Origin: Haliotis rufescens
Taxonomy: Eukaryota
Direction of reading: 5' to 3'
NCBI RefSeq assembly: GCF_023055435.1
Contig: NW_025963891.1
Location: 9,920,001-9,984,000 of the forward strand
DNA length: 64,000 bases
Shown here: positions 2,386 through 59,100 of the stretch, in pieces
Position numbering within the stretch: the first letter of the stretch is position 1
Layout: each line of letters opens with the position of its first letter
Program-made: the position numbers and the translations under genes
Notes under the pieces: generated by a model
The model's input: only the letters and a program-made list of their open reading frames with translations
Told to the model about the DNA's origin: nothing
Database searches by the model: none

Positions 2386-2395
2386 TTGTGACCTA

Positions 2396-4265: not shown

Positions 4266-4269
4266 GTAT

Positions 4270-6423: not shown

Positions 6424-6493
6424 TGACTAAGTCACCAACTATGAAGAGTCGGAACATATATAAAGCTTTACATTTAAACACATCACAACAGTT
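6424..6493 (+). promoter_or_regulatory. Core promoter of the saposin-like gene (repeated upstream of every copy)
   Basis: TATATAAA at 6457-6464, an Inr-like ACAGTT about 30 nt downstream (6488-6493), and the palindrome TGACTAAGTCA at 6424-6434. All are conserved in the five copies. Confidence 0.65.
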
Positions 6494-6514
6494 GAATTTC
6501 TCAGCTTCAAGACA

Positions 6515-9282
6515 ATGAAGACTTTTTTCGCATTTGTAGTCGCTGTTGTAGCAAGCCAAGGTGAGTGTTTTAAATGACCATGCCTTCTTACTATCCACTT
6601 CTCAGTAGATACGATGGACGTGGCTAAGGCGCAGCAATATGATATTTACGGAAATCCAATTATATGCATTAATTTTTTTTCTGATGTGTTCGAATGTAAA
6701 CATATTTACATTAATTATTTTTTGACTAAAGTTGACGCGTTGACGTTTTATATTTACATGTTTTCAGCTATGGCCCTGTCGATACAGGATGGAAATGATG
6801 AGTGCGCTCATTGCATCGCTTTCATTACTGATCGCCAGGAGATGGAACTCGAATCGATTGTACGTAAATAATACTGACTGTATCCCATGATGGTTCGTAA
6901 AAATCGTCCTATTTCCAAACGTGCCCACTAACATATACGTACATGTTTAGAACATTATCTTTTTGATTATACACTAATGGTTTATACCCCTACCCTCAAT
7001 ATAATACTTAAAGTAATGGGACCAGTCAACCAAGTGTTCGTTTCGGAATCTACTTCTGAATTTTCCAATTTCCCAAAATAAATGGGATCTGTCCAGTCTT
7101 TGGTAGAATATTGTACTGAACCCTACTCTCATATATTTATCAGTATTCTATCTACTACACATAGATCTATTACTACATATATTTAAAGATAAGTTTACCC
7201 CAGAACGTAAGGAGGTAAACATGTCACAAATACACTCATGTCTCTTCTCCAGATCTATTGTACTGAGTTTTTATATAACATGTGTTTCAGGAAGAACAGG
7301 AAGCAAAAATGAACAACGTCTGTTCTTCAATGGAACCCAGCAAGGTGGAAGAGGTGAGATAAATAATAGTTCTCAATAGTAAACAAACGGATTTCATAAA
7401 CAACAAGATCAGATGTTTCATTGCAAAGAGCAATGTACTGAATATATCACAAGGTAGATAATTAAAAAGGTACAATAATCTATATTCATAGCAAACTGTG
7501 TTGATCCTTAACGCTGTGAATTAGATAAACTAATATTCTTGAGGCTAATATTATAAAAACGCGTATTTGCAGTGTAAGACAAAAGTGCAGAAAATATGCC
7601 AGAAGAAGAAGGACAAAGTCAACAGTCAGGTAACTGTTAATTTTTACATCATCAGAAATCCTGCTCCAATCAATGGACTTATCATGAAGCACAAGATTGC
7701 GTCAGCTTACACTTGCATATACTGACATCATGAAAAAGGTGATTGATGCAAAAAGTTCAGGAATGTACCAATCAGATGGAATTTAGATACCCGGGGAAAG
7801 AGATGGAAAACTCTATATCAGCATTTCAGCTTACGTTTCCTTTATCAGAATTATAACCTTTACCATGTTTTCACTGAGTTACACAAAATGCTCAGGATTG
7901 GACTATGATTTTACCCTTTAACTCTATAATTATTATTGTACACTGCAAGTAAGCAAAAGGATTTGGTTTTACAACATATCATGTAATTGTGTTCACCTTC
8001 ACAGAGCCCAGAAGCCATCTGTAAAGCCACCAAGTACTGCCCGTCGCTTGATACCGCCAACATGAACACACCTACAAACAAGGCAAGATTAATACCTAGT
8101 ACCAGTCCTCTAGTCAACAGGTTTAGTGAGTATAACTCATCAAACTTACACACAATCAAATGAATGTCTTAACGTGTTCATGATTTGTACAATTTACTGG
8201 GTTAGAAAGTAGGTTCTACTTTCGTCACACTTATTGTGCTGCAATATTAGTGTTACATTGGTTACAAACGAAAGTTTAAAAACTGTAGGCATAATGATGC
8301 ATTCAATTTGTCATTTCATGTTTCGTAGGTTCAAGGGAGAGGGCGATGCAAGGACTGCAAGAACTTTCTAAAAGACGTCAAAGAAAGGCAAATGGTCACT
8401 GTTGTGAGTGACAAATATTTAGAAGGTTTAATCACTCCTATGTTGGTCTGGCACATTTACATTATTTCCCAAACTACATAAAACATGTACCATCTTGTTT
8501 TAAGTAAAATAACTAATCGTACACGTTGATGTAATGCAATCATAACATCATGACAACGTGTAGTTAAAAACGTTTCTTTTACAGGCCTCTGTAAAGGAAC
8601 TGATCGAAACCATGTTCTGTGAAAAGCTCAGCGAAGACCGCCAGGAACAGGTGTGTATATAGTTATCCAATCATTGTTCAGTTTTCTGATTATGATATAA
8701 ATTCAGTAGTTCTTTCCTTATTGTAGTCCTAGACAATCCATGTGTTTGACACCATGAGTATCGGATACAATGACGTGCACCATTCAAGTCAGCTAGCCTG
8801 ACCATCTGATCCCGTAGGTCGCCCCTAATATTGTGTTACAGTTAATTTCATAATCAGTCATGATATATATTCTTATTTCATTATATAATGTGTGTATGTA
8901 TACAATTTCACGTTCATCTAATTATGTTTGAGCATTCTGTGTACTCTGTTTCAGTGTGCTGACTTTCTAGATGCAGCAATCGAAATGGAAATCGAGCTAC
9001 TAGATTTGGTGGTAAGTAAATGTTGGATGTATAAGTGAGATACTCATTGTTTTGATATTTACATAAACTTACACTTTACAGCCATATATGTCGATTTCTT
9101 AAGACATATCCATTAAGGACACTTATCAATATGTATGATCGGAATGAAGTATAAAACCTGGATAGTAAGAGTTAAAAGACTACTGTTTATTTAATTAAAA
9201 CTATGTAAAAGAATGGAACTTTTGTTTATTACAGAATGTTAAAACGTCATGCAAACTACTTGGTATGTGTGGTGCCAACTAG
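6515..9282 (+). CDS. Secreted two-domain saposin-like (SAPLIP) protein, copy 1 (9 coding exons, 193 aa)
   Basis: Exons 6515-6560, 6768-6859, 7291-7353, 7573-7629, 8005-8082, 8329-8403, 8585-8650, 8955-9011, 9235-9282 (TAG). All introns are GT-AG except intron 5 (GC-AG). Product: MKTFFAFVVAVVASQAMALSIQDGNDECAHCIAFITDRQEMELESIEEQEAKMNNVCSSMEPSKVEECKTKVQKICQKKKDKVNSQSPEAICKATKYCPSLDTANMNTPTNKVQGRGRCKDCKNFLKDVKERQMVTVASVKELIETMFCEKLSEDRQEQCADFLDAAIEMEIELLDLVNVKTSCKLLGMCGAN. It has a hydrophobic signal peptide and two C-x2-C...C-x10-C...C-x5-C saposin-B cysteine arrays. Confidence 0.9.
8725..8826 (-). mobile_element. SINE fragment in intron 7 (each unit)
   Basis: The reverse complement GGGCGACCTACGGGATCAGATGGTCAGGCTAGCTGACTTGA resembles ~45003-45110. 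Confidence 0.6.
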
Positions 9283-9319
9283 TTGTAAGGTGAGTTGTAT
9301 TGAACGTGATATAGGCGAG

Positions 9320-9500
9320 GTAAGGTGAAGTGAGGCGGGATGAGTTTTAACATCGCGTTCAAGATTATTGCACTCCATGTGGCGGCTTGTTCTCGTCCGG
9401 ACTTTATAGTGCTTGCTCACTGAGATGCCATGTCGCAGTTTCACATAGAAACCCCACTCTGACACATTATACTCAGACACCGAGCCGGCCAGTGCTTGTT
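9320..9500 (-). mobile_element. Probable SINE fragment (central-domain-like) in intron 9
   Basis: The minus strand ACTGGCCGGCTCGGTGTCTGAGTATAATGTGTCAGAGTGGGG resembles a conserved SINE central domain (V-domain-like, from recall). Confidence 0.45.
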
Positions 9501-9854
9501 GATGGTTGATGTTGCGCTAAAGCACACACGGATGCTTTTGAACATTGCTACTCTCCTTTTACAAATTGAAATTATATACTGTTTCGTGTTGATTCCCAAA
9601 TTGAAATAGTATGTTAATCCAGAAGTCTGAACGTAAAAGAACTTCGTGTGAAACCAACAAACAACCAGCATGTTGTATACAATCAACAAATGAATTACAA
9701 AAATTAACTGGGTTTACAAATCAGGACAAATTACTCCACATTAATTACAATGGCGCCTCGGGCAGACGCCCTGTCCAATACACCATGGAGGTTTTCCTTC
9801 TGTCTACGCAATAGTTACACCGCTGTCTGAGGAACAAGTTTCGGTTGGAACTAT

Positions 9855-10050
9855 TGACTGTTTGTTTCGTTTACTTCAACGCCACAATCAGCACTATTCC
9901 AGCTATATGAAGGCCTGTCTGAACCAGACACGCAATCAGCCAAATTACCGAGTCTGGCCACTCGACCCATTAAGTCGCCTCTAACGACCAGCATAGGTTG
10001 ATTGGGAGAAATACTTACTCTGGACCAACTGTCTTCTGCTCCCCGGACGG
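9855..10050 (-). mobile_element. Diverged SINE in intron 9 (each unit)
   Basis: The reverse complement resembles 44939-45192 (ATGCTGGTCGTTAGAGGCGACT...CATATAGCTGGAATAGTGCTGATTGTGGCGTT). Confidence 0.65.
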
Positions 10051-10150
10051 ATGCTCTGTCCACTTTACTGATGACTAGTCATGATATGAAATATTCTTAC
10101 ATTATTACACATGACACGGTTAACTTCAGTGTGTATTTTTGGTATTGCAG

Positions 10151-10240
10151 ATGCTGACAATGCTGCCTCTCGATCCTTCATCGCCCACGAACAACGTCAC
10201 GTGTAATTTATTGTCAATAAAACTTTGCATTTGACCAGAG
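10151..10240 (+). other. Non-coding terminal (3'-UTR) exon with polyadenylation signal, copy 1 (also at 20370, 30459, 48438, 57036)
   Basis: Strong donor AAG|GTGAGT at 9289/9290, 7 nt after the stop codon. Acceptor TTTTTGGTATTGCAG ends at 10150. AATAAA at 10216-10221. The exon end is approximate. Confidence 0.6.
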
Positions 10241-12420
10241 TACTGTTGTTGCTTGGACGGTTTATTTGAGATATGGAGATCATTTGTTGAACCTGTGTCA
10301 TATAATAGGCACGTGAAAATTATTTAGCAATCGAATCCTAGTGGAACGCCATTTATCACACCATACATAACATAGACTCTCGACAGTCAAGAACGCAAAG
10401 AAATTGGTCCAGGCTGGTCAACTGATGATCAAATGAAACTACTTTAACACGTTTTTCTATTATCGTTCTATTTTGAGGATAGAGGAAGTGAGTTGGGTTT
10501 GGTTTGTCCAAGGAACGGAACTCTGCACGGCGAATAGCGGCGCCTCAGACGACTGAACCAATCGCATCCTCATCCTTGAGGATAGACCATTATGCGGTGA
10601 ACTAAATACTCAGAACCAGACATTATACGATTAAATGAGGAGACACATGTATACAGGATCAAGACAAATGGACATAATAAGTTGTCACCAGTTAATTCCT
10701 GAAACAAATTGAAATAAAACGGTTATTGGCAAATGAACCCATTACGATTACTATTTTCAACAGATATCCTAAGAAAATAAACAGAACGAAGCTATCGCGT
10801 GTACAGCAAAGAGTGAGTGAGTTTAGGTTAACGCCTCTTTGAACAGTACGTCAGTTTCATCAGCACTCGTGACGGGTGCTATAATGCTATGTCACACATG
10901 GGTGCTCTTGAATATTAATACTCTCTTTTGATTAATTGAAATTATATTCACTGCTCCACGGCTCAGTCATATATATCCGCTTCACCCACGGGCACTTTAC
11001 CGGGGAGCATGGTACATGTGACGGGTAATCGTGACCTAGTGTCGCACGGGATATGATGTGGTAGTGCATGGTTGCCTAGCATTGGACAATAAGTGAAGGA
11101 AACATTACATTCCTTAGAACTTTTATCAGATGGATACCAGACCTATCCTTCATTTGAATGGTTAAAGCTTCACCAACGTTACAAACTTTTAACTCAGAAC
11201 TTATCAACTTAAAATATTTGAATAAACTTTAATTTTAAAGTCTCTGCAATGAGCATGACCTTTCACGGGGCACAAAGTGCTCTTGTCTCACAAGGTAAGA
11301 GATTCAGTCTAACTAGTGGTCTGGTGACTCTCTTGGAACATCTCCTTTCAGTCTCTTCACATTCCTGCTGTAGTACAGTAGGTCTGGTATTCATCTCGTC
11401 AGGCACTGATAATGATGTACTCGTAGTGTCTTGATGGTCATCTGGCTTCCACTGCTCAGTTGTCTTGTTGCTGGACATTACTGAATCTCACTTACAGTCA
11501 CGGTTTCTGCCGTCCTAGTAGTTTCCTCCCACATATGAGTGAGTGAGGAATGAGTATGGTTTTACGCCACTTCTATATTGCAACAATATCACGAAAGGGA
11601 CATCGGAACATGGGCTTCATGCATTGTACTCAGGTGGGAAAAAACCCCGGGTGTTTGCCGTGACGAACTAACACTTTTACAACTAGGCTACCTCATCGTC
11701 CCTGTGATGTGCAGTACTACAGTATATTTGTTTTGTTTATATTTAATTCACTTACTTTATTTGAATGTTCATCTGGAATATAATTATATATTAATCATAA
11801 AATATCGTAAAATATCACTGACATTAAATGTTTGGAGAATTGACATTACCTGAAGTTGATGTCATAATGCGTTATCACCCAAATAGATGTTATCCCACAC
11901 CAGGGTGGTGAACACATTGCCGCGAAATCCATAGGGAACATCGGTTTCATGCTGTAATTTTGTTTTGTCGTCAAAGCCGTATCAAGAGTCACCGAGTAGG
12001 AAACGCCGTGTCCTAACGAGTTGAGTAGCTGCTGTAATTTGGTAGACCCTTTAATGTGTCTTTAGGGCCACACCTAAAGCAAAGTGTTTTCGCATCAGCT
12101 TTCCACCACAGAGAAAAGACGAATTATGTCTTGTGAAAGAGAAAGTATTTTTCTGGTTGTTATTTCCTTTTATTTCCACCAACTGCCGTTCTTTTAATAC
12201 TTTTCTCAATTATCTAAATACGAAAATTTCTTGAAGGCTTTAATGCGAGGTGTTCAGATTATATACACATTTAGTGTACTGTTTATAACATGACGCATGG
12301 TACCGCATTTCTGTACATACTGGGTCCGAGTACCAAATACGGGTCTCTTGTTTTCTCTTCAAGGATCAATTTTTGTTTTGATCGCCTTCATACATTTTGT
12401 CCTGTCCATTTTGTGACCTA

Positions 12421-14732
12421 GATCAGAAGATGTTTTGGACTTTAAATCGACGTGGGAACTAATTGCATGCCTTGAAGCAGAAGGTGTGCAAACAAGAAAT
12501 GCCCAAGAAATCTGTACCATCATGCCAAACCATATGAAACAGGTATCAAGCGACCAAGATGAGCTTCACTTTGATCAAGAGGTTAGGAAGCACATTGAGG
12601 GACACGTGGAAAGGATACGTTTGGACATACAGGGCACTGACCAGTCATCAGTTGATCTTCTAACAAGTCCAGGGAAAAAAAAAAAAATTTGCAAAACCCC
12701 AAAACGCAAACAAGGCTGCTGGTATGGACAACATGTTTTTGAACATCTTTGATATGGTGGAAAATACCTTACAAAGTGCTTGTCAGAACTCTTTAACCTC
12801 GTTATTACATCTGGATACATTCCTGCCCAATGGAAAAGAGGCACTATCATACCGATATTCAAAGGAGGCAACATGTCTCGCGTGTTACCGGATTCCTATC
12901 GAGGGGTAACCCTATTGCCGGTTATATACAAGGTATTTGAAGTCATTGTAAGTAGTAGAATCCAACAGCTCACCAACAGTGAATCCTTTCCATGTATACA
13001 ACAACGTGGTTTCTAGAAAGGCCTTTCCTCCAGTGACACCTCCTTAATTGTACAAGAATCAATACTTCATAAAGAACGATCGGACGCCATCAACTTAGCC
13101 TTCTTAGACAGTTCAAAAGCGTTTGACGCAGTATGACACCAAGGACTTTTATACAAGCTGTATCATCTTGGAATCCCAGATGCACTGTGGGGGATATTTG
13201 ACAATAGATACAAGTTCATCGAGAGCAGCGTCCTTGTTAATAACACAAGATCATACTGGTTTCCGTTATCAAGAGGTGTTCGGCAAGGAAGCGTCCTGTC
13301 GGCAAAACTCTACCTGCTATACATAGATGAACTGTGAGAGAAACTGTCCACCAGCAAACTTGGTGCAGTGATCTTGGATATCCATGTAATGGCACCCACT
13401 CAAGCGGACGATATAGCAATTGTTAGTCCAGTATCAGCAAATCTGCAGAAGATGATGACCATATGTGAAAGATATAGTTCAGACTGGCGGTTCTCTTTTT
13501 ATCTCCTTCCAAGAGCCAGATAGTCAGATATAGTGACAGAAAAGCAGCTGCTTCTAGTGTTGTACTCTATGGACGTGATATCCCAGTGACAAATGAGCTT
13601 AAGCACGTTGGTTATATTGAACACTGAATTTAACTCATGGTAGAGAACTCTGGAGAGCTGCTCAAAGATGAAAGCATCAGCCATGGCACTCGTCAAATCG
13701 GGACTGCATGAACGCGCTCTAAACCCCATGACAAGCTCAAAACTTATTACGGCAATTTGTATCCCAAAGGCTATGTTTGGGTGTTATGGTCGATGATTTC
13801 CAAGGCAGAAATTCTGGCTATAGAAGGAGCACAGAGGTCCATTCTCAAAATGGCACAGGGACTTCCACGTCATACTAGGTCTGACATAGTTAATGCTCTT
13901 CCCGGCTGGCTCCCCATAGAATCACTTTTCAACATCAGGAAACTATTCTTTCTTGGCCACCTCTGTAATTGTTCTAATCATCTGCTTTCTAAGAAGGTTT
14001 TTATGACTCGTATCTCCATGTATATACATAAGTGTTCATCCACAAGTATGGGCTTTGTCCCAGACATATGTCGCATCCTCCACAAGTATTCATTATACTG
14101 TCACCTGGAGGCATTTCTTAGTTCCAGTACATCCCTGGAGCGGAAGATATGGAAAAGGACAGTCAAAGAAGCCGTGAATACTTTTGAAGTACCAGCATGG
14201 CGGGAAAGACTTTCATCAGAAACTGACACTGTGCACTTTGAGAGTATTCACACGTGGCGAGGAGGATAGCTCGAGAGTGTCCTGAGCTAAAGGCAGCTGC
14301 CTGTTTTGCTGTCCACATTTGTGCGATGTGGAGACCGGGGAAATTACATGGTATCTGTTCACAGTGTAGTATTAACTACCATGACTTACTGACTCACGTA
14401 CGGTGCCACTGTGTGAGTAAGAGAACAATAAGAGAGAACTTATGGTGTGACATTGTGTGTATAGGTCCCGTTGACATCAGCGTTGAACTCCACAACAAAT
14501 CAGGTTATGTTTGCTGTCCTGTAAGCCACCTTTGGATACTGATCCAGATACCAGTGGCTCTTACTCACGAAGTGAAATTCGAGGACTATACCGCTTTCAT
14601 TATATGGACGGAATTTACTAACAAAATACGTTACCACAGTGGTATATGGTGGTATACTCTGACAATGTAATAATTTTCATGTACTTATCTTTAATATTAT
14701 ACCTTGTAACTCTCCTATTGAGGAATAAAAGT
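12421..14732 (+). mobile_element. Degenerate LINE RT copy, unit 2
   Basis: Same element, retaining the 442-bp segment (ORF 13757-14269, QRSILKMAQGLPRHT). Confidence 0.9.
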
Positions 14733-16776
14733 GTACTTCTCCCTTTCTTTTAATACTTTTAATTACCTCTGCACAAAGTTTCTTGGAGGCTTTCATGCGA
14801 GGAATTCAGATTATATACACATTTAGAGTACTGTTTTATAACATGACGCATGGTACCGCGCTTCTGTACATGCTGGGTCCGAGTTCCCAATCTGTAATAA
14901 AATCTGGTCATCTCCTTTCAGTCGTGCATCCTGTAAAGATTTGTCAGCATTTGTATCACATCTGATAAGGGTCTCTTGTTTTGTCTTCAAGGATGTTTCA
15001 TCAACAATAACTTTAGTCTTTTTAATGATGACACACTCCTCAGGAAGTATATGATTTGATCGCCTTCATACTTTTTGTCCTGAGTTATTTTGGATCTAAG
15101 AACAATCCTTGTCATTTTAAGGGATGGTTAAGAGGTTGATACATCTGTATCTCCATGTTGAGGGGAAGGTTCACAGGTAAACACATCTGCCTCTCCATCA
15201 ACATGTCGTAAACACACCGGACACCATGAACTGTACGTTCCATAAACCGTCGATTGCAGTAGCGGCGATAAATTGCGTGTCACTGCACTTGGACGGCGTA
15301 AGACTTTGATTATACAAGAAGGTATAAGACGCCGTTCCCAGGCGAAACTATAATGTGTATGTCACCAGGATATAGTTCGAATGTTGCCGATTGCTTCCTA
15401 ATCAATAAAATAAAATAAAATCTACTAAAAATGTACTGGCATAAACAATTCAGAAACAACAAATACAGAACCCACCTAGATGAAACACATCAAACCATAA
15501 TACACAAAATGCCATGTCTATTTGGAATTAATTAAAACACAAATGATTACATGCAACTGAATTGTTAAGGCAATGGAAACTAAACACTCACTTATGTGGT
15601 AATTAATCAGGTGTGAAACTGGAAAGTAAAGTTGATAAATGAACATGAGTATAATTACTACATATTCTTTGTTTGGTTCAAATACAAATCTGAAGACAAA
15701 ATTATCAAAATGAAAACGTTCGTACTCATGATCATCGGATGCTGGCTTCCCTAAGGGGCGTAACTCTTGACTGCCAATTACGGAACAATAGGCGACTGCA
15801 CCCATATCTCCCTCCATGTCATATATTACAGAAATTTATAATCTTACAGATACTAAGAACGACCACCATTGTATTGACTGTATTTGTATAACTTGCCGGA
15901 TAAAGAAAGTATACACTTGACAAGGGATTTTGACAACCGTTGTCAAAAGGTTACCAAGCTGAAAACAGTCGCCGAAACACTGCAAAACTTAAGGTATAAA
16001 TCTATGAAATACATCACAATCGAATAATCATTTTTGTTTGTTTCAATTTTAGCAACAATAAGAAATGTGTTTACACTTTCTTTTGCCCGAAAGTTTAGAT
16101 CTCTTGACAAATTCTCAAGAAGAATACATGCAAGCGTTTTAGGAAAGACGTTTCTGTTTATCACCTGACTTTTGGAGAGTGAGTGAGAGAGTGGGTGAAT
16201 TTGGTTTTACGCCGCTTTTAGCAATATTCAAGCAATATCACGGCGGGGGACACCAGAAATGGACTTCATCCATGTGAAGAATGGAACCCGGGTCTTCGGC
16301 GTGACGAGCGAACGCTTTATCAACTAGGCTACCTCACCGCCCAACTGACTCTTGTAGCATTGGCAATGTCAGATAATTGACATAGTTTAGTAATCATGTA
16401 GATGCAAAACAAATTCAGTCAGCTGTTGACTAGTTACGACTCTTGAGTTCTTTCATCATGTCAATTGATTGTAGGGTGTATCACCATGGTCAACAGTAGG
16501 TGGCAAAGAGATCTAATCGAGAGAGATATCAAAAACAGGTTATTTTATTAAGAACGCGACAATTATTGTCTCAACATGTGTAGGTTTCAAACAGAGAATA
16601 TTCGTTAAGAACAGGACATCTGTCTGAATCGTCTAGTTGAATTAGTTTGCTGTTAATTAAAGCCATCCTACTGTGCGCTGTGATTGACTAAGTCACCAAC
16701 TATGAAGAATCGGAACATATATAAAGCTTTACATTTAAACACATCACAACAGTTGAATTTCTCAGCTTCAAGGACA

Positions 16777-46200: not shown

Positions 46201-47569
46201 TATACATGTACAGGCTAGGTATTTGCCTACAGCAACACCTGCATAACTGTTTATTCACGCGTGGTGTGGCAGATTGTAATTGACCGACAACAAGTATTGT
46301 AGAATCACCTGTAAATAAGGCCGACACTGTAATTAGACAACGTACTAATGAGAATATGAGAATTATCATTAGAAGGCTGTTACGTTTTTCTTAACTATTA
46401 CCATTTTCATACCAAAAGTGACAATGCAGTTAAAAGTTGCTTTAGTGTCACAATATTCACTCACGTTTTCCTCAATCGCATTGAAACATAATTCCTACTG
46501 GTCAGTTCGACACTGCTTGTAATTAAATAATTATTTCGAGATTTCGTTAGAATGTAAGATATTCAGCCAAACGTTATGCAATAAAAGTTTATGCAATAAA
46601 AGTTTCTTTCCATTAAAATACGCGCACGCGTACCTGTCACGTAATTGCACAGTGGGATGTATCAACGGGTCATAAAATGGGAAATGAAATAGAAACTAAC
46701 TAAAATTTAATGTTGTACACGCACATGAATTCGTATGATAAACTGCCAAAACGTTTTGAGAGATAAGACCGGGTTCATTAAAGATGTTGGGTGCGGTTAG
46801 GACCAAACTTTTTCAGCTCAGAGTGTTAGTGGTCCTGGAACCCATAGTGTCAAACAGGTTCTGCACAATACGTCAATCAGATTCTACTGTTCAACAGCAT
46901 TGTCACTGAATTTCAGAACTCTGGCATGATATAATAATCAAGGATTTCGAAGGCAAAACCTTTTCTCGCGAAATATTTCAATAAATCTGTAAAATAGCTG
47001 AATTGAGTAAAATTGAGTTACATTATGTGCCATGAAAATAGTAAGAACACCTGCATGTATTTGCGAAACAAAAACATAAATTTTAAGTAAAGGAAAATAT
47101 TCTCGCCCATGGGCCAAACCCTTTTCTCGCCCATGGGCGAAATATTTCAATATCGCTATAAAATCGTTGAATTAAGTTAAAATGAGTTAAATTTTGTGTC
47201 ATGATACTTGAATGAATACATTAAATGTATTTGCGAAACAAAAACATGAGTTTTAAGTAAAGGAACATATTCTCGCCCATGGGCAGGCCCATGGGCGACA
47301 TAGTCTAAATATTGAGTTTTTGAACATTTTTTTTTTCATTTTTTCTTCCTTGGTATGTTCCCATGAAAACGGCATGTTTAATTTTGTAAATACCTTTAAC
47401 CGAGACTGGGCAAAGAGCGTAGAGTTTCTGGACTTTTGGGTTTCCAGAATTAAAATGGGACGTGTTGACTGTTTATTTAATTAAAAATATGTAAAAGAAT
47501 GGAACTTTTTTTTAATTACAGAATGTTAAAACGTCATGCAAACTACTTGGTATGTGTGGTGCCAACTAG
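37288..47569 (+). CDS. Secreted two-domain saposin-like protein, copy 4 (7.5-kb transposon in intron 8)
   Basis: Exons 37288-37333, 37541-37632, 38064-38126, 38346-38402, 38778-38855, 39102-39176, 39358-39423, 39728-39784, 47522-47569. Coding sequence intact (S20P, H30D, A33T, G117R). Intron 8 is expanded by the insertion at 39959-47467. Confidence 0.85.
40129..41070 (+). repeat. Subterminal tandem repeat, ~170-bp unit x ~5, punctuated by GCCCATGGGC palindromes
   Basis: Unit starts at 40221, 40391, 40561, ~40755 and ~40925. A cluster of GCCCATGGG motifs lies at 40129-40222. Confidence 0.95.
43217..43760 (-). pseudogene. Heavily decayed MULE (Mutator-like) transposase C-terminal remnant inside the foldback element
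   Basis: Minus-strand fragments in the expected order: GSLHFWLQSV (cf. GCxFHxxQ), RASAFPLVH (cf. RAAxLPLVP), FDTMGSRTTN (RTTN at 43482-43471), PNIYKFV (~43437-43417), IQTGGRLPTKRRKYR and VEYADAVS (43253-43230). Multiple stops and frameshifts. Confidence 0.6.
44939..45192 (+). mobile_element. SINE copy nested in the foldback element
   Basis: GACCCGTGAAGATC...GCTTGTCGTAAGAAGCGACT...GGGATCGGGTGGTCAGGCTCGCTGACTTGGTTGA...TGTGGCGTTA followed by an (AAAC)n tail. The same family occurs reversed at 9855-10050 and 8725-8826. Confidence 0.75.
46965..47298 (-). repeat. Inverted counterpart of the 170-bp subterminal repeat (~2 units)
   Basis: Reverse complement of the left-arm unit; the inner unit is more diverged. 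Confidence 0.9.
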
Positions 47570-49700
47570 TTGTAAGGTGAGTTGTATTGAACGTGATATA
47601 GGCGAGGTAAGGTGAAGTGAGGCGGGATGAGTTTTAACATCGCGTTCAAGATTATTGCACTCCATGTGGCGGCTTGTTCTTGTCCGGACTTTATAGTGCT
47701 TGCTCACTGAGATGCCATGTCGCAGTTTCACATCGAAACCCCACTCTGACACATTATACTCAGACACCGAGCCGGCCAGTGCTTGTTGATGGTTGATGTT
47801 GCGCTAAAGGACACACGGGTGCTTTTGAACATTGCTACTCTCCTTTTACAAATTGAAATTATGTACTGTTTCGTGTTGATTCCCAAATTGAAATAGTATG
47901 TTAATCCAGAAGTCTGAACGTAAAAGAACTTCGTGTGAAACCAACAAACAACCAGCATGTTGTATACAATCAACAAATGAATTACAAAAATTAACTGGGT
48001 TTACAAATCAGGACAAATTACTCCACAGTAATTACAATGGCGCCTCGGGCAGACGCCCTGTCCAATACACCGCGGAGGTTTTCCTTCTGTCTACGCAATA
48101 GTTACACCGCTGTCTGAGGAACAAGTTTCGGTTGGAACTATTGACTGTTTGTTTCGTTTACTTCAACGCCACAATCAGCACTATTCCAGCTATATGAAGG
48201 CCTGTCTGAACCAGACACGCAATCAGCCAAATTACCGAGTCTGACCACTCGACCCATTAAGTCGCCTCTAACGACCAGCATAGGTGGATTGGGAGAAATA
48301 CTTACTCTGGACCAATGGTCTTCTGCTCCCCGGACGGATGCTCTGTCCACTTTCCTGATGACTAGTCATGATATGAAATATTCTAACATTATTACACATG
48401 ACACGGTTAACTTCAGTGTGTATTTTTGGTATTGCAGATGCTGACAATGCTGCCTCTCGATCCTTCATCGCCCACGAACAACGTCACGTGTAAAACATTG
48501 TCAATAAAACTTTGCATTTGACCAGAGTACTGTTGTTGCTTGGACGGTTTATGTGAGATATGGAGATCATTTGTTGAACCTGTGTCATATAATAGGCACG
48601 TGAACATTATTTAGCAATCGAATCCTAGTGGAACGCCATTTATCACACCATACATAACATAGACTCTCGACAGTCAAGAACGCAAAGAAACTGGTCCAGG
48701 CTGGTCAACTGATGATCAAATGAAACTACTTTAACACGTTTTTCTATTATCGTTCTATTTTGAGGATAGAGGAAGTGAGTTGGGTTTGGTTTGTCCAAGG
48801 AACGGAACTCTGCACGGCGAATAGCGGCGCCTCAGACGACTGAACCACTCGCATCCTCATCCTTGAGGATAGACCATTATGCGGTGAACTAAATACTCAG
48901 AACCAGACATTATACGATTAAATGAGGAAACACATGTATACAGGATCAAGACAAATGGACATAATAAGTTGTCACCAGTTAATTCCTGAAACAAATTGAA
49001 ATAAAACGGTTATTGGCAAATGAACCCATTACGATTACTATTTTCCACACATTTCCTAAGAAGATAAACAGAACGAAGCTATCGCTTGTACAGCAAAGAG
49101 TGAGTGCGTTTAGGTTAACGCCTCTTTGAACAGTACGTCAGTTTCATCAGCACTCGTGATGGGTGCTATAATGCTGTCACACATGGGTGCTCTTGAATAT
49201 TGATACTCTCTTTTGATTAATTGAAATTATATTCACTGCTCCACGGCTCAGTCATATATATCCGCTTCACCCACGGGAACTTTACCGGGGAGCATGTAAA
49301 TGTACAGTGACAAAGACAATAAGGAGACATGTAAGGTTCAACCATTTCATTGCATGGTACAAGTGACGGGTAATCGTGACCTAGTGTCGCACGGGATATG
49401 ATGTGGTAGTGCATGGTTGCCTAGTATTGGACAATAAGTGAAGGAAACATTACATTCCTTAGAACTATTATCAGATGGATACCAGACCTATCCTTCATTT
49501 GAATGGTTAAAGCTTCACTAACGTTACAAACTTTTAACTCAGAACTAATCAACTTGAAATATTTGAATAAACTTTAATTTTAAAGTCTCTGCAATGAGCA
49601 TGACCTTTCACGGGGCACAAAGTGCTCTTGTCTCACAGGGTAAGAGATTCAGTCTAACTAGTGGTCTGGTGACTCTCTTGGAACATCTCCTTTCAGTCTC

Positions 49701-51257
49701 TAGAAAGGCCTTTCCTCCAGTGACACCTCCTTAATTGTACAAGAATCAATACTTCATAAAGAACGATCGGACGCCATCAACTTAGCCTTCTTAGACAGTT
49801 CAAAAGCGTTTGACGCAGTACCTGCTATACATAGATGAACTGTGAGAGAAACTGTCCACCAGCAAACTTGGTGCAGTGATCTTGGATATCCATGTAATGG
49901 CACCAACTCAAGCGGACGATATAGCAATTGTTAGTCCAGTATCAGCAAATCTGCAGAAGATGATGACCATATGTGAAAGATATAGTTCAGACTGGCGGTT
50001 CTCTTTTTATCTCCTTCCAAGAGCCAGATAGTCAGATATAGTGACAGAAAAGCAGCTACTTCTAGTGTTGTACTCTATGGACGTGATATCCCAGTGACAA
50101 ATGAGCTTAAGCACGTTGGTTATATTGAACACTGAATTTAACTCATTGTAGAGAACTCTGGAGAGCTGCTCAAAGATGAAAGCATCAGCCATGGCCCTCG
50201 TCAAATCGGGACTGCATGAACGCGCTCTAAACCCCATGACAAGCTCAAAACTTATTACGGCAATTTGTATCCCAAAGGCTATGTTTGGTGTTACGGTCGT
50301 TGATTTCCAAGGCAGAAAATCTGGCTATAGAAGGAGCACAGAGGTCCATTCTCAAAATGGCACAGGGTCTTCCACGTCATACTAGGTCTGACATAGTTCA
50401 TGCTCTTCCCGGCTGGCTCCCCATAGAATCACTTATCAACATCAGGAAACTATTCTTTCTTGGCCACCTCTGTAATTGTTCTAATCATCTGCTTTCTAAG
50501 AAGGTTTTTATGACTCGTATCTCCATGTCTATATACATAAGTGTTCATCCACAAGTATGGGCTTTGTCCCAGACATATGTCGCATCCTCCACAAGTATTC
50601 ATTATCCTGTCACCTGGAGGCATTTCTTAGTTCCAGTACATCCCTGGAGCGGAAGATATGGAAAAGGACAGTCAAAGAAGCCGTGAATACTTTTGAAGTG
50701 CCAGCATGGCGGGAAAGACTTTCATCAGAAACCGACACTGTGCACTTTGAGAGTATTCATCCGGATGTGACCCCACACGTGGCGGGGAGGATAGCTCGAG
50801 AGTGTCCTGAGCTAAAGGCAGCTGCCTGTTTTGCTGTCCACATTTGTGCGATGTGGAGACCGGGGAAATTACATGGTATCTGTTCACAGTGTGGTATTAA
50901 CTACCATGACTTACTGACTCACGTACGGTGCCACTGTGTGAGTAGGAGAACAATAAGAGAGAACTTATGGTGTGACATTGTGTGTATAGGTCCCGTTGAC
51001 ATCAGCGTTGAAATCCACAACAAATCAGGCTATGTTTGCTGTCCTGTAAGCCACCTTTGGATACTGATCCAGATACGAGTCGCTCTTACTCACGAAGTGA
51101 AATTCGAGGACTATACCGCTTTCATTATATGGACGGAATTTACTAACAAAATACGTTACCACAGTGGTATATGGTGGTATTCTCTGACAATGTAATAATT
51201 TTCATGTAATTATCTTTAATATTATACCTTGTAACTCTCCTATGGAGGAATAAAAGT
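49701..51257 (+). mobile_element. Degenerate LINE RT copy, unit 5 (5' part deleted)
   Basis: Starts at a ~1.66-kb deletion junction and has a second ~180-bp deletion at 49820. Retains 16 bp absent from units 1-4, giving the 212-aa ORF 50557-51195. Confidence 0.9.
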
Positions 51258-53399
51258 ATATATAAAAGTACTTCTCCCTTTCTTTTAATACTTTTAATTA
51301 CCTCTGCACAAAGTTTCTTGGAGGCTTTCATGCGAGGAATTCAGATTATATACACATTTAGAGTACTGTTTTATAACATGACGCATGGTACCGCGCTTCT
51401 GTACATGCTGGGTCCGAGTTCCCAATCTGTAATAAAATCTGGTCATCTCCTTTCAGTCGTGCATCCTGTAAAGATTTGTCAGCATTTGTATCACATCTGA
51501 TAAGGGCCTCTTGTTTTGTCTTCAAGGATGTTTCATCAACAATAACTTTAGTCTTTTTAATGATGACACACTCCTCAGGAAGTATATGATTTGATCGCCT
51601 TCACACTTTTTGTCCTGAGTTATTTTGGATCTAAGAACAATCCTTGTCATTTTAAGGGATGGTTAAGAGGTTGATACATCTGTATCTCCATGTTGAGGGG
51701 ATGGTTCACAGGTAAACACATCTGCCTCTCCATCAACATGTCGTAAACACACCGGACACCATGAACTGTACGTTCCATAAACCGTCGATTGCAGTAGCGG
51801 CGATAAATTGCGTGTCACTGCACTTGGACGGCGTAAGACTTTGATTATACAAAGAAGGTATAAGACGCCGTTCCCAGGCGAAACTATTATGTGTATGTCA
51901 CCAGGATATAGTTCGAATGTTGCCGATTGCTTCCTAATCAATAAAATAAAATAAAATCTACTAAAAATGTACTGGCATAATCAATTCAGAAACAACAAAT
52001 ACAGAACCCACCTAGATGAAACACATCAAACCATAATACACAAAATGCCATGTCTATTTCGAATTAATTAAAACACAAATGATTACATGCAACTGAATTG
52101 TTAAGGCAATGGAAACTAAACACTCACTTATGTGGTAATTAATCAGGTGTGAAACTGGAAAGTAAAGTTGATAAATGAACAATTCAAACGCCTTCCATAC
52201 ATCAGTTTGACGTGTTTCACATATCATTTACAATCTAATCAACTCGGTTCTCGTTATCTACCCATCCAGAATAATAGGTTCACCACACAATGAGTTATCG
52301 GTTGAATAAATAAGAGCACTCTTTTGCATGCAGTGTGCGTACATTATGCTGTTTGATAAAATCTTGCATATCGCATGAGTATAATTACTACATATTCTTT
52401 GTTTGGTTCAAATACAAATCTGAAGACAAAATTATCAAAATGAAAACGTTCGTACTCATGATCATCGGATGCTGGCTTCCCTAAGGGGCGTAACTCTTGA
52501 CTGCCAATTACGGAGCAATATCTCCCTCCATGTCATATATTACAGAAATTTATAATCTTACAGATATTAAGAACGACCACCTTTGTATTGACTGTATTTG
52601 TATAAACTGCCGGATAAAGAAAGTATACACTTGACAAGGGATTTTGACAAACGTTGTCAAAAGGTTACCAAGCTGAAAACAGTCGCCGAAACACTGCAAA
52701 ACTTAAGGTATAAATCTATGAAATACATCACCATCGAATAATCATTTTTGGTTTGTTTCAATTTTAGCAACAATAAATAATGTGTTGACGCTTTCTTTTG
52801 CCCGAAAGTTTAGATCTCTTGACAAATTCTCAAGAAGAATACATGCAAGCGTTTATAGGAAAGACGTTTCTGTTTATCACCTGACTTTTGGAGAGTGAGT
52901 GAGAGAGTGAGTGAATTTGGTTTTACGCCGCTTTTAGCAATATTCAAGCAATATCACGGCGGGGGACACGAGAAATGGACTTCATCCATGTGAGGAATGG
53001 AACCCGGGTCTTCGGCGTGACGAGCGAACGCTTTATCCACTAGGCTACCCCACCGCCCAACTGACTTTTGTAGAATTGGCAATGTCAGCTCATTGACATA
53101 GTTTAGTAATGGTCAACAGTAGGTGGCAAAGAGATCTAATCGAGAGAGATATCAAAAACAGGTTATTTTATTAAGAACGCGACAATTATTGTTTCAACAT
53201 GTGTAGGTTTCAAACAGAGAATATTCGTTAAGAACAGGACATCTGTCCGAATCGTCTAATTGAATTAGTTTGCTGTTAATTAGAGCCATCCTACTGTGCG
53301 CTGTGATTGACTAAGTCACCAACTATGAAGAGTCGGAACATATATAAAGCTTTACATTTAAACACATCACAACAGTTGAATTTCTCAGCTTCAAGGACA

Positions 53400-56167
53400 A
53401 TGAAGACCTTTTTCGCATTTGTAGTCGCTGTTGTAGCAAGCCAAGGTGAGTGTTTTAAATGGCCATGCCTTCTAACTATCCACTTCTCAGTAGCTACGAT
53501 GGTCGTGGCTAAGGCGCAGCAATATGATATTTACGGAAATCCAATTATATGCATTAATTCTTTTTCTGATGTGTTCGAATGTAAACATATTTACATTAAT
53601 CATTTTTTGACTAAAGTTGACGCGTTGACGTTTTATATTTACATGTTTTCAGCTATGGCCCTGTCGATACAGGATGGAAATGATGAGTGCGCTGATTGCA
53701 TCGCTTTCATTACTGATCGCCAGGAGATGGAACTCGAATCGATTGTACGTAAATAATACCGACTATATCCCATGATAGTTCGTAAAAATCGTGTTATTTC
53801 CAAACATACCCACTAACATATACGTACATGTTTAGAACATTATCTTTTTGATTATACACTAATGGTTTATACCCCTACCCTCAATATAATACTTAAAGTA
53901 ATGGGACCAGTCAACCAAGTGTTCGTTTCGGAATCTACTTCTGAATTTTCCAATTTCCCAAAATAAATGGGATCTGTCCAGTCTTTGGTAGAATATTGTA
54001 CTGAACCCTACTCTCATATATTTATCAGTATTCTATCTACTACACATAGATCTATTACTACATATAATTAAAAATAAGTCTACCCCAGAACGTAAGGATG
54101 TTAACATGTCACAAATACACTCATGTCTCTTCTCAACATCTAATGTACTGAGTTTTTATATAACATGTGTTTTAGGAAGAACAGGAAGCAAAAATGAACA
54201 ACGTCTGTTCTTCAATGGAACCCAGCAAGGTGGAAGAGGTGAGATAAATAATAGTTCTCAATAGTAAACAAACGGATTTCATAAACAACAAGATCAGATG
54301 TTTCATTGCAAAGAGCAATGTACTGAATATATCACAAGGTAGATAATTAAAAAGGTACAATAGTCTATATTCATAGCAAACTGTGTTGATCCTTAACGCT
54401 GTGAATTAGATAAACTAATATTCTTGAGGCTAATATTATAAAAACGCGTATTTGCAGTGTAAGACAAAAGTGCAGAAAATATGCCAGAAGAAGAAGGACA
54501 AAGTCAACAGTCAGGTAACTGTTAATTTTTACATCATCAGAAATCCTGCTCCAATCAATGGACTTATCATGAAGCACAAGATTGCGTCAGCCTACATTTG
54601 CATATACTGACATCATGAAAAAGGTGATTGATGCAAAAAGTTCAGGAAAGTACCAATCAGATGGAATTTAGATACCCGGGGAAGGAGATGGAAAACTCTA
54701 TATCAGCATTTCAGCTTACATTTCCTTTATCAGAATAATAACCTTTACCATGTTTTCACTGAGTTACACAAAATGCTGAGGATTGGACCATGTTTTTACC
54801 CTTTAACTCTATAATTATTATTGTACACTGCGAGTAAGCAAAAGGATTGGGTTTCACAACATATCATGTAATTGTGTTCACCTTCACAGACCCCTGAAGC
54901 CATCTGCAAAGCCACCAAGTACTGTCCGTCGCTTGATACCGCCAACATGAACAAACCTACAAACAAGGCAAGATTAATACCTAGTACCAGTCCTCTAGTC
55001 AACAGGTTTAGTGAGTATAACTCATCAAACTTACACACAATCAAATGAATGTCTTAACGTGTTCATGGTTTGTACAATTTACTGGGTTAGAAAGAAGGTT
55101 CGTCTTTCGTCACACTTATTGTGCTGCAATATTATTGTTACATTGGTTACAAACGAAAGTTTAAAAACTGTAGGCATAATGATGCATTCAATTTGTCATT
55201 TCATGTTTCCGTAGGTTCAAGGGAGAAGGCGATGCAAGGACTGCAAGAACTTTCTAAAAGACGTCAAAGAAAGGCAAATGGACACTGTTGTGAGTGACAA
55301 ATATTGAGAAGGTTTATCACTCCTATGTTGTTCTGGCACATTTGCATTATTTCCCCAAATACATAAAATATGTACCATCTTGTTTTAAGTTAAATTAACA
55401 AATCGTACACGTTGATGTAATGCAATCATAAAATCATGACTACGTGTAGTTAAAACTTTTCTTTTACAGGCCTCTGTAAATGAACTGATCGAAACCATGT
55501 TCTGTGAAAAGCTCAGCGAAGACCGCCAGGAACAGGTGTGTATATAGTTATCCAATCATTGTTCAGTTTTCTGATTATGATATAAATTCAGTAGTTCTTT
55601 CCTTATTGTAGTCCTAGACAATCCATGTGTTTGACACCATGAGTATCGGATACAATGACGTGCACCATTCAAGTCAGCTAGCCTGACCATCTGATCCCGT
55701 AGGTCGCCCCTCATATTGTGTTACAGTTAATTTCATAATCAGTCATGATATATATTCTTATATCATTATATAATGTGTGTATGTATACAATTTCACGTTC
55801 ATCTAATTATGTTTGAGCATTCTGTGTACTCTGTTTCAGTGTGCTGACTTTCTAGATGCAGCAATGGAAATGGAAATCGAGCTACTAGATTTGGTGGTAA
55901 GTAAATGTTGGATGTATAAGTGAGATACTCATTGTTTTGATATATACATAAACTTACACTTTACAGCCATATATGTCGATTTCTGTAGACATATCCATTA
56001 AGGACAATTATCAATATGTATGATCGGAATGAAGTATAAAACCTGGATAGTTAGAGTTAAAAGACTACTGTTTATTTAATTAAAAATATGTAAAAGAATG
56101 GAACATTTTTTTATTACAGAATGTTAAAACGTCATGCAACCTACTTGGTATGTGTGGTGCCAACTAG
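53400..56167 (+). CDS. Secreted two-domain saposin-like protein, copy 5 (most divergent copy)
   Basis: Exons 53400-53445, 53653-53744, 54176-54238, 54458-54514, 54890-54967, 55215-55289, 55470-55535, 55840-55896, 56120-56167. Intact. Differences from copy 1: H30D, S87T, T108K, G117R, V135D, K141N, I168M, K185N. Confidence 0.9.
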
Positions 56168-59100
56168 TTGTAAGGTGAGTTGTATTGAACGTGATATAGG
56201 CGAGGTAAGGTGAAGTGAGGCGGGATGAGTTTTAACATCGCGTTCAAGATTATTGCACTCCATGTGGCGGCTTGTTCTTGTCCGGACTTTATAGTGCTTG
56301 CTCACTGAGATGCCATGTCGCAGTTTCACATCGAAACCCCACTCTGACACATTATACTCAGACACCGAGCCGGCCAGTGCTTGTTGATGGTTGATGTTGC
56401 GCTAAAGGACACACGGGTGCTTTTGAACATTGCTACTCTCCTTTTACAAATTGAAATTATGTACTGTTTCGTGTTGATTCCCAAATTGAAATAGTATGTT
56501 AATCCAGAAGTCTGAACGTAAAAGAACTTCGTGTGAAACCAACAAACAACCAGCATGTTGTATACAATCAACAAATGAATTACAAAAATTAACTAGGTTT
56601 ACAAATCAGGACAAATTACTCCACAGTAATTACATTGGCGCCTCGGGCAGACGCCCTGTCCAATACACCACGGAGGTTTTCCTTCTGTCTACGCAATAGT
56701 TACACCGCTGTCTGAGGAACAAGTTTCGGTTGGAACTATTGACTGTTTGTTTCGTTTACTTCAACGCCACAATCAGCACTATTCCAGCTATATGAAGGCC
56801 TGTCTGAACCAGACACGCAATCAGCCAAATTACTGAGCCTGACCACTCGACCCATTAGGCCGCCTCTAACGACCAGCATAGGTTGATTGGGAGAAATACT
56901 TACTCTGGACCAACTGTCTTCTGCTCCCCGGACGTATGCTCTGTCCACTTTCCTGATGACTAGTCATGATATGAAATATTCTTACATTATTACACATGAC
57001 ACGGTTAACTTCAGTGTGTATTTTTGATATTGCAGATGCTGACAATGCTGCCTCTCGATCCTTCATCGCCCACGAACAACGTCACGTGTAATACATTGTC
57101 AATAAAACTTTGCATTTGACCAGAGTACTGTTGTTGCTTGGACGTTTATGTGAGATATGGAGATCATTTGTTGAACCTGTGTCATATAATAGGCACGTGA
57201 ACATTATTTAGCAATCGAATCCTAGTGGAACGCCATTTATCACACCATACATAACATAGACTCTCGACAGTCATGAACGCAAAGAAATTGGTCCAGGCTG
57301 GTCAACTGATGATCAAATGAAACTACTTTAACACATTTTTCTATTATCGTTCTATTTTGAGGATAAAGGAAGTGAGTTGGGTTTGGTTTGTCCAAGGAAC
57401 GGAACTCTGCACGGCGAATAGCGGCGCCTCAGACGACTGAACCAATCGCATCCTCATCCTTGAGGATAGACCATTATGCGGTGAACTAAATACTCAGAAC
57501 CAGACATTATACGATTAAATGAGGAAACACATGTATACAGGATCAAGACAAATGGACATAATAAGTTGTCACCAGTTAATTCCTGAAACAAATTGAAATA
57601 CAACGGTTATTGGCAAATGAACCCATTACGATTACTATTTTCAACAGATATCCTAAGAAGATAAACAGAACGAAGCTATCGCTTGTACAGCAAAGAGTGA
57701 GTGAGTTTAGGTTAACGCCTCTTTGAACAGTACGTCAGTTTCATCAGCACTCGTGATGGGTGCTATAATGCTATGTCACACATGGGTGCTCTTGAATATT
57801 GATACTCTCTTTTCATTAAGTGAAATTATATTCACTGCTCCACGGCTCAGTCATATATATCCGCTTCACCCACGGGAACTTTACCGGGGATCATGTAAAT
57901 GTACAGTGACAAAGACAATAAGGATACATGTAAGGTTCAACCATTTCATTGCATGCTACAAGTGACGGGTAATCGTGACCTAGTGTCGCACGGGATATGA
58001 TGTGGTAGTGCATGGTTGCCTAGTATTGGACAATAAGTGAAGGAAACATTACATTCCTTAGAACTATTATCAGATGGATACCAGACCTATCCTTCATTTG
58101 AATGGTTAAAGCTTCACCAACGTTACAAACTTTTAACTCAGAACTTATCAACTTGAAATATTTGAATAAACTTTAATTTTAAAGTCTCTGCAATGAGCAT
58201 GACCTTTCACGGGGCACAAAGTGCTCTTGTCTCACAAGGTAAGATATTCAGACTAACTAGTGGTCTGGTGACACTCTTGGAACATCTCCTTTCAGTCTCT
58301 TCACATTCCTGCTGTAGTACAGTTGGTCTGGTATTCATCTTGTCAGGCACTGATAATGATGTACTCGTAGTGTCTTGATGGTCATCTGGCTTCCACTGGT
58401 CAGTCGTCTTGTTGCTGGACATTACTGAATCTCACTTACAGTCACGGTCTCTGCCGATCTAGTAGTTTCCTCCCACATATGAGTGAGTGAGGAATGAGTA
58501 TGGTTTTACGCCACTTCTATATTTCAACAATATCACGAAAGGGACAACGGAACATGGGCTTCATGCATTGTACTCAGGTGGGAATAAAACCCGGGTGTTT
58601 GCCGTGACGAACTAACACTTTTACAACTAGGCTACCTCATCGTCCCTGTGATGTGCAGTACTAGATATCAATATAAATAAGGAACATTTGGTTAAAATAG
58701 AGACCAGAAAAATCCAGAAGTCCATAAGACAGTATTATCGAAGTAAGTGGTGGCGGTTGTGTATTAGTTCTTCGGTCTTGCGATCACAACCAAATGAGGA
58801 CACCAAATATAAAGTGCCGACCCGGCATTCGAACACTGGCTGCCTGCGTAAAGATTGAGCATACTGGATACTATTATAGTATAGTATGGTATAGATTATA
58901 GAACGAGACATTATGTTTTAACATGAAAAGCAGAAAGCAGTGACACCATGAGAAGCATGATATACTGTGCAAAAAGGTGAACGGACTAAAGGGATCATGG
59001 CTACTAACTCTTACATGTACTTGAAATACCTGACCAGCTTCAATGAACCTTGTATAAAAATAAATATTGCATCTTATTACATTTCATAACATTGTTTGTT

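Follow-up and report, generated by a model that had tools for sequence, protein, structure and literature searches.

A tandem cluster of genes for a secreted-type, two-domain saposin-like protein in the abalone Haliotis rufescens

Several groups of saposin-like proteins (SAPLIPs) have been described. Prosaposin and PSAPL1 are characterized by four SapB domains that are flanked by SapA domains and carry one N-glycan sequon each. Amoebapores, NK-lysin, granulysin and caenopores (SPP) are single-domain and clearly amphipathic proteins; NK-lysin is cationic, the amoebapore is His-dependent, and some, such as caenopores and amoebapores, are acidic and active in the lumen of the gut or phagosome. 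More generally, secreted SAPLIPs that are small, unglycosylated and multi-copy tend to act on membranes, as effectors in the gut or in immune cells. Pro-surfactant protein B is a multi-saposin precursor in which a single domain is the lipid-active product. Here, we have analyzed a stretch of 64,000 nucleotides of the Haliotis rufescens genome (C113:9920001-9984000, hereafter the window), in which a nine-exon gene for a 193-aa, two-domain saposin-like protein is present in five tandem copies.

The coding exons of copy 1 measure 46, 92, 63, 57, 78, 75, 66, 57 and 48 nt and add up to 582 nt, that is, 193 aa and a stop codon (Table 1). The original prediction, made from the sequence alone, that nine exons of 46-92 nt are spliced into a 193-aa protein with a signal-like N-terminus and two six-Cys arrays was confirmed by sequence reading and by identity with RefSeq proteins, and the Cys positions given for the two arrays were exact. 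The product of copy 1 has Cys at 28, 31, 57, 68, 76, 92, 98, 119, 122, 149, 160, 184 and 190, Cys76 lying outside the two arrays. As had been claimed, the reading frame, all 13 Cys and a TATA box (TATATAAA) located 58-59 nt before the ATG are retained in each of the five window copies. The same is true of the poly(A) signal, and large indels are confined to intergenic and intronic DNA. Splice sites are also conserved throughout: in every copy, all eight acceptors are AG and seven of the donors are GT, while the donor of intron 5 is GC and not GT. In copy 1, a donor 8 nt past the stop codon joins to the terminal exon.

The 30 aa of exon 2 (window:6770-6859) were run by phmmer against 1.84 billion representatives and matched a 193-aa protein over its residues 17-46. 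The 90% cluster of this protein comprised 18 named NCBI proteins, including six 193-aa 'proactivator polypeptide-like 1' entries of H. rufescens on the 22,494,865-bp contig C113 together with one 263-aa variant, and at least 10 entries of 193 aa from H. cracherodii named 'prosaposin-like' or 'uncharacterized'. The joined models of window copies 2, 3, 4 and 5 and of three copies upstream of the window (D, E and F) were identical to RefSeq proteins (193/193), and thus every junction is independently corroborated. The product of copy 1 agreed with the nearest RefSeq proteins among those listed in 189/193 residues, no identical protein being listed; later protein searches used the matching RefSeq proteins instead. 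The cluster is therefore not 'hidden', as had been supposed, since RefSeq models the same exons in both H. rufescens and H. cracherodii. The suggestion that the protein was probably not described is right only as far as function is concerned: no functional study and no paper on these proteins or accessions were found in the literature, whereas the genes are already annotated under automatic names and represent a functionally uncharacterised family of a well-known superfamily. When 5.8 billion clustered proteins were searched, first with a single member as query and also with the family profile (targets of 0.55-1.75x query length, word-based sensitivity), only Haliotis proteins were returned, as in the 1.84-billion search. 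On the basis of these results, the family appears to be restricted to Haliotis, in agreement with the lineage-specific origin originally proposed.

The 193-aa product starts with a hydrophobic leader encoded by exon 1 alone (residues 1-16), which consists of MK, an 11-residue hydrophobic run and S-Q-A and has a grand average of hydropathy (GRAVY) of +1.59. Two six-Cys domains follow, separated by an 18-residue linker. Both have the spacing C-x2-C, x25/26, C, x10, C, x23, C-x5-C; this saposin-type arrangement is retained in all nine intact H. rufescens copies, and the 12 domain Cys are invariant or nearly so in H. rufescens, H. cracherodii, H. rubra and H. asinina. The product contains no N-X-S/T sequon, as previously stated. 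Judged by eye, the leader would be cleaved after Ala16, and it is likely that an acidic, unglycosylated protein of ~20 kDa (isoelectric point about 5) is secreted. Charge and hydrophobicity are unevenly distributed. Domain 1 is very polar (GRAVY -0.76), with a net charge of -9 in helices 1-2 and +7 in helices 3-4. Domain 2 (GRAVY -0.02) has a basic helix 1 and a hydrophobic, acidic C-terminal half, the amphipathic residues 160-191 reaching +0.87. A convertase cleavage before domain 2 was considered and dropped, as the basic motif differs between copies (GRRR, GRGR, GKRR).

The relationship to saposins was supported by profile, language-model and structural comparisons. Among 177,635 PDB sequences, the family profile matched human saposin B (4v2o, 6slr and 1n69) with E = 1.4e-3 to 1.8e-3, the alignment covering domain 2 only, from its first to its last Cys. 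With hhalign, domain 1 could be aligned to domain 2 (P = 1.9e-4), and domain 2 to a Pfam-positive domain of a neighbouring gene (P = 1e-3). The top named neighbours in a protein-language-model search were SapB clusters (best score 0.90, 203 shared features). The AlphaFold2 (AF2) model was all-helical, with domain 1 forming an open helical hairpin (predicted local distance difference test, pLDDT, 80-91). The ten best Foldseek matches in PDB were all saposins B, C or D (probability up to 0.92, at E-values >= 1), and the C-terminal domain of mouse SP-B was among the structural matches. In a VIA second look, domain 1 was aligned with open saposin A (Z 7.7, root-mean-square deviation 4.0, 75/80 residues, 20% identity) and domain 2 with saposin D (Z 4.2, 71 residues aligned). 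Gene structure provided further evidence. Each domain is interrupted by three phase-0 introns, of which one lies 15 residues past the second Cys, one immediately ahead of the fourth and one 18 residues beyond the fourth, and these positions are equal in domain 1, domain 2 and a canonical minus-strand paralogue at the edge of the array. It follows from such four-exon units that the protein arose by internal duplication of a cassette, one that recurs in the canonical saposin-like genes on the flanks of the array. Thus, the claim of a secreted-type, two-domain saposin-like protein was well founded: domain 2 is highly likely to be a SAPLIP domain, and domain 1, for which the indications are indirect (mainly Cys spacing, intron positions and the internal repeat), is somewhat less likely to be one.

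Direct repeats divide the window into six ~10-kb units with 97-100% mutual identity, the sixth being gene-free. The five complete units are 97-99% identical and are set apart by intergenic and intronic indels. Those longer than 60 bp comprise insertions of 435 bp and 7.5 kb and deletions of 190 bp and ~1.95 kb, the latter lying between genes in unit 5, and none of them hits an exon. The 7.5-kb insertion extends intron 8 of copy 4 to 7737 nt and leaves its coding sequence untouched. Indels are shared between upstream copy G and copy 2 and between copies 1 and 3, which suggests that two-unit blocks were duplicated. The original count of five intact copies plus the tail of another holds within the window, where the tail exon is real, but the array runs on upstream and the whole cluster comprises 12 loci in ~111 kb, of which nine are intact. 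On the plus strand, F, G and the five window copies make up a set of seven that are nearly identical, copy 5 being the last and most divergent among them; the older copies D and E and the partial copies A, B and C complete the cluster. DNA and profile searches of the whole 1.33-Gb assembly placed all relatives inside this single stretch of C113, and tblastn with the joined protein revealed no additional divergent copies. No Pfam family was found in the open reading frames of the ~6-kb intergenic part of the unit. We also observed an inverted duplication at the cluster's old end, where copies B and C stand head to head.

Exons diverge less than introns in the older copies. Compared with copy 1, the exons of copy D were 91.9% identical and its introns 83.4%, the corresponding values for copy E being 96.0% and 91.1%; in the seven young copies, exon and intron divergence were about equal, as is to be expected of very recent duplicates. 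Pairwise dN/dS (ratio of nonsynonymous to synonymous substitution rates) ranged from 0.06 to 0.75, so that no pair reached 1. Upstream of the ATG, positions -60 to -1, which make up the core promoter with its TATA box, hardly vary among ten copies. The most conserved exon is exon 4, coding for the Lys-rich helix 3 of domain 1: it has no nucleotide change in any of the nine intact copies, though the introns of copy D are only 83% identical, which would reflect either strong constraint including synonymous sites or local gene conversion. Thus, exons and core promoter are under purifying selection. Exon 2 (helix 1 of domain 1) has nine nonsynonymous and no synonymous variable sites among the nine intact copies; positive selection was rejected as unproven in view of the small numbers and the pairwise dN/dS below 1. 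Copy D has the highest dN/dS of the family (0.54-0.75) and may be decaying.

In the protein tree, six young H. rufescens copies form one clade without H. cracherodii members (support 90/89), copy 5 lying outside it, whereas copy D groups with two H. cracherodii genes as their orthologue (support 93/95) and H. cracherodii has its own set of near-identical copies. The rufescens-only clade indicates that amplification or homogenisation was recent, as had been anticipated from the window, and species-specific. Each of the two species has thus expanded or homogenised, on its own, a small family of older origin.

Other saposin-like genes are located nearby. At the edge of the array, the minus strand bears a canonical-type paralogue with a TATA box of its own and a signal exon of 49 nt, but with an in-frame TAA in its second exon. 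Further four-exon canonical cassettes follow on the same strand past the window end, and canonical saposin-like genes were also found elsewhere on C113 and, as a many-domain prosaposin-like locus with full SapB_1 and SapB_2 matches, on another contig. The flanking canonical genes share with the 193-aa family the chromosome neighbourhood, the phase-1 signal exon and the four-exon phase-0 domain cassette, but they differ from it in exceeding the threshold of Pfam SapB_2 and in their hydrophobicity (GRAVY +0.44 to +0.48). The 193-aa family is a polar, divergent offshoot within a larger SAPLIP neighbourhood.

Table 1. Coordinates of the gene copies, repeat units and other features (window positions unless a contig or L012 is given)
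Feature	Position	Strand	Remarks
Window	C113:9920001-9984000		
Whole cluster	C113:9865546-9975905		12 loci, 9 intact
Five complete tandem units	66-57035	+	
Repeat unit 1	66-10150	+	terminal exon to terminal exon
Repeat unit 2	10151-20369	+	
Repeat unit 3	20370-30458	+	
Repeat unit 4	30459-48437	+	
Repeat unit 5	48438-57035	+	
Repeat unit 6	starts at 57036	+	gene-free
Gene copy 1	6457-10221	+	TATA box to poly(A) signal; sequence reading, translation and splice sites checked
Copy 1 coding exons	6515-6560, 6768-6859, 7291-7353, 7573-7629 (exon 4), 8005-8082 (GC donor), 8329-8403, 8585-8650, 8955-9011, 9235-9282 (incl. stop)	+	
Copy 1 other features	TATA 6457-6464; ATG 6515; stop 9280-9282; terminal exon from 10151; AATAAA 10216-10221	+	
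Gene copy 2	16718-20440	+	joined model = P0015 (XP_046350215.2), 193/193
Copy 2 coding exons	16777-16822, 17030-17121, 17538-17600, 17820-17876, 18252-18329, 18576-18650, 18832-18897, 19202-19258, 19483-19530	+	
Gene copy 3	26762-30529	+	joined model = P0008 (XP_048256785.1), 193/193
Copy 3 coding exons	26821-26866, 27074-27165, 27597-27659, 27879-27935, 28311-28388, 28635-28709, 28891-28956, 29261-29317, 29542-29589	+	
Gene copy 4	37229-48508	+	joined model = P0011 (XP_048256784.1), 193/193
Copy 4 coding exons	37288-37333, 37541-37632, 38064-38126, 38346-38402, 38778-38855, 39102-39176, 39358-39423, 39728-39784, 47522-47569	+	
~7.5-kb insertion in copy 4	about 39959-47467		intron 8
Gene copy 5	53341-57106	+	joined model = P0009 (XP_046350304.1), 193/193
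Copy 5 coding exons	53400-53445, 53653-53744, 54176-54238, 54458-54514, 54890-54967, 55215-55289, 55470-55535, 55840-55896, 56120-56167	+	
Terminal exon of upstream copy G	66-136; AATAAA 131-136	+	3' untranslated region or alternative last exon; recurrent, ttgcag acceptor
Terminal-exon recurrences	10151, 20370, 30459, 48438, 57036	+	ttgcag acceptor
Copy A	upstream of window		partial, without exons 8-9
Copy B	within C113:9875185-9879582	-	partial, exons 4-9; 1-nt deletion in exon 7 (frameshift)
Copy C	within C113:9875185-9879582	+	partial, exons 2-9; domain Cys149 lost
Junction of B and C	near C113:9876790-9876930		head to head
Copy D	exon 7 at C113:9888967-9889032	-	older, frame intact; exon 7 acceptor CG not AG; = P0021, 'prosaposin-like', 193/193
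Copy E	upstream of window	+	older, intact; = XP_046350243.2, 193/193
Copy F	upstream of window	+	= XP_048256786.1, 193/193
Copy G coding exons	C113:9916473-9919226	+	before window
Canonical-type paralogue	62634-63692	-	array edge
Further canonical cassettes	L012:4900-9250	-	past window end
Canonical saposin-like genes	C113:10.21-10.24 Mb		
Many-domain prosaposin-like locus	C13:27.726-27.748 Mb		other contig
Near-palindrome	6424-6440 and copies		about 20 nt before TATA box
157-bp element	2158-2313, 4282-4434		85% identity
Dispersed repeat	8731-8826		intron 7

Some further features of the repeat unit should be mentioned. In all six copies, the terminal exon (~85 nt) has a phase-0 reading frame of 27 codons, which contains two Cys and one N-V-T sequon and ends with a TGA right after the AATAAA. 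In RefSeq P0007 (H. rufescens, 263 aa) and P0022 (H. rubra), exon 8 is joined straight to the terminal exon and exon 9 is skipped; the terminal exon may represent an alternative C-terminus or the leftover of an older last exon. The near-palindrome TGATTGACTAAGTCA ahead of the TATA box is identical in the seven young copies and changed in D, E and A, and may be a candidate bZIP-type site. A 157-bp element occurs twice in the intergenic part of each unit. In intron 7, a ~100-nt dispersed repeat has dozens of copies on many contigs (75-88% identity) and looks like a fragment of a short interspersed element (SINE) or a miniature inverted-repeat transposable element (MITE).

Once H. rufescens and H. 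cracherodii had separated, the ~10-kb units were multiplied or homogenised in the former, in part as two-unit blocks. We propose that the 193-aa product is an effector that is made in bulk and interacts with lipids or membranes outside the lysosome. It would most likely work in the lumen of the gut or digestive gland, or else in the defence of mucosa or haemolymph, much as caenopores and amoebapores do. Domain 2, with its basic helix 1 and hydrophobic acidic C-half, could be the membrane-facing, active module, and domain 1, whose acidic helices 1-2 stand against basic helices 3-4, an accessory or latch domain. The effector reading was adopted because SAPLIPs that are small, unglycosylated, multi-copy and secreted are usually membrane-active. 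A candidate lead for a digestive context is a SapB1-annotated gene of H. discus hannai, whose kinship to the 193-aa family is not established and which was differential in gonad samples together with amylase, endoglucanase, mannanase and chitotriosidase (PMC11989308). The loci very probably constitute a real, expressed SAPLIP gene family, as judged from their sequences. Cluster history and inferred effector role, taken together, appear to be the best explanation and on balance a probable one, and the specific extracellular membrane-active role is put forward tentatively.

It should be noted that a number of observations weigh against this proposal. SapB_1 and SapB_2 (PF05184/PF03489) gave no match at E <= 10 on five single exons, and when P0001, P0002 and P0003, which are full-length members of the family, were submitted to the profile check by which the saposin assignment was to be verified, none was found at E <= 1 either. 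Six-frame scans of the whole genome with both profiles yielded many matches elsewhere and none in the window, which is explained by each domain being divergent and split across four exons. Searched alone with the language model (Atlas), domain 1 reached lead-level scores of 0.80-0.82 only. The AF2 model is of middling confidence (mean pLDDT 63.7, predicted template modelling score 0.40), the Foldseek E-values are not below 1, and in a search of every representative chain in PDB generic helical hairpins scored as high as the saposin match (Z 7.2). The Z values of 7.7 and 4.2 obtained for the single domains likewise do not exceed those of such hairpins. Both domains are more polar than the flanking canonical abalone saposin domains, which fits poorly with classical lipid extraction, and the mature protein is acidic and essentially His-free. 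The proposed lipid or lytic function is somewhat weakened by this polarity and by the absent Pfam SapB match. In addition, the CG acceptor of copy D implies that not every 'intact' copy need be functional.

Several other explanations were considered. If the array were an artefact or dead DNA, that is, haplotype over-expansion in the assembly or unexpressed pseudogenes modelled by homology, the nearly equal exon and intron divergence of the young copies would be expected, and three of the 12 loci are indeed truncated or frameshifted, apart from the CG acceptor in copy D. However, the units carry private structural variants, 1-3% substitutions and a two-unit higher-order pattern; the independent H. 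cracherodii assembly has at least 10 genes of 193 aa; and the 582-nt frame has been kept over nine exons in nine copies, with exons and promoter of the older paralogues conserved above introns. Such an artefact is thus highly improbable. It also seems quite improbable, if slightly less so, that the protein is a lysosomal sphingolipid activator, a housekeeping prosaposin-type cofactor of lysosomal hydrolases as the RefSeq name implies. The NCBI naming and the fact that human saposins A-D are the best sequence and structure matches agree with this function, but the protein has two domains instead of four, lacks SapA domain and N-glycosylation sequon, falls below Pfam thresholds and belongs to a genus-restricted, multi-copy family with rapid turnover, and a canonical many-domain prosaposin-like locus is present elsewhere in the genome.

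A gamete or reproductive-tract protein, fast-evolving, genus-specific, with a role in sperm-egg interaction or spawning and both amplified and diversified like other abalone reproductive genes, would account for the genus-restricted distribution, for the parallel species-specific copy sets of H. rufescens and H. cracherodii and for the 9:0 ratio of nonsynonymous to synonymous variable sites in exon 2, and the SapB1-annotated gene of H. discus hannai was strongly sex-biased in the gonad samples (PMC11989308). Nevertheless, overall dN/dS was below 1 in all pairs, the 9:0 ratio is not significant given nonsynonymous and synonymous sites at ~4:1, and the co-varying genes of that study are digestive enzymes, which would point to digestive-gland tissue in the samples and not to gametes. 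This function is hence considered unlikely. Equally unlikely, in our opinion, is a non-lipid scaffold, in which charge-segregated helices bind polyions or proteins (mucus, algal polysaccharide or shell matrix) and the fold serves as a disulfide-stapled frame: the GRAVY of -0.76 and the -9 and +7 halves of domain 1, its Lys-rich helix 3 in the most conserved exon and its open hairpin in the AF2 model (pLDDT 80-91) are all in line with it, but domain 2 retains an amphipathic, hydrophobic C-half (+0.87 for residues 160-191). A more specific version, to which we likewise give a small chance, is that domain 1 is a saposin fold whose lipid core has been swapped for an intramolecular acid-base helix zipper. 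Three disulfides would staple the helices, Cys76 being extra and free, and the domain could act as a pH- or salt-sensitive latch or pro-domain silencing domain 2, or as a polyion-binding module, which would make it a new functional variant amplified independently in the sister abalones.

If expressed, the family would provide a clean and datable case of the birth of an invertebrate effector-type gene family, proceeding from divergence from canonical neighbours through internal domain duplication to tandem amplification that was species-specific and took place in parallel in the red and the black abalone. These two species are a concern for conservation as well as for aquaculture and are affected by bacterial diseases such as withering syndrome, and a highly expressed secreted SAPLIP could be a marker or effector of gut or mucosal defence. 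The polar, charge-zippered domain 1 might also serve as a probe of how far the saposin fold can drift away from lipid binding. The surprise for a specialist is modest, the family being already annotated and its superfamily well known.

In comparison with the systems described above, the abalone protein shares with prosaposin and PSAPL1 a signal peptide, here a putative one, followed by tandem SapB-type six-Cys domains, but it has two domains and 193 aa whereas these have four domains and >500 aa. Unlike them, it is without SapA domains, sequon and Pfam SapB match, and it is genus-restricted and tandemly amplified. As with pro-surfactant protein B, there is more than one saposin-type domain per secreted-type precursor and the domains are of unequal hydrophobicity; in contrast to that precursor, no sign of proteolytic maturation was found, and no convertase site is conserved among the basic residues that precede domain 2. 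With amoebapores, NK-lysin, granulysin and caenopores, the family has in common that its members are small, unglycosylated, secreted-type saposin-like proteins in expanded families of fast turnover, from which it differs in having two unusually polar domains with neither a conserved His switch nor a net cationic surface.

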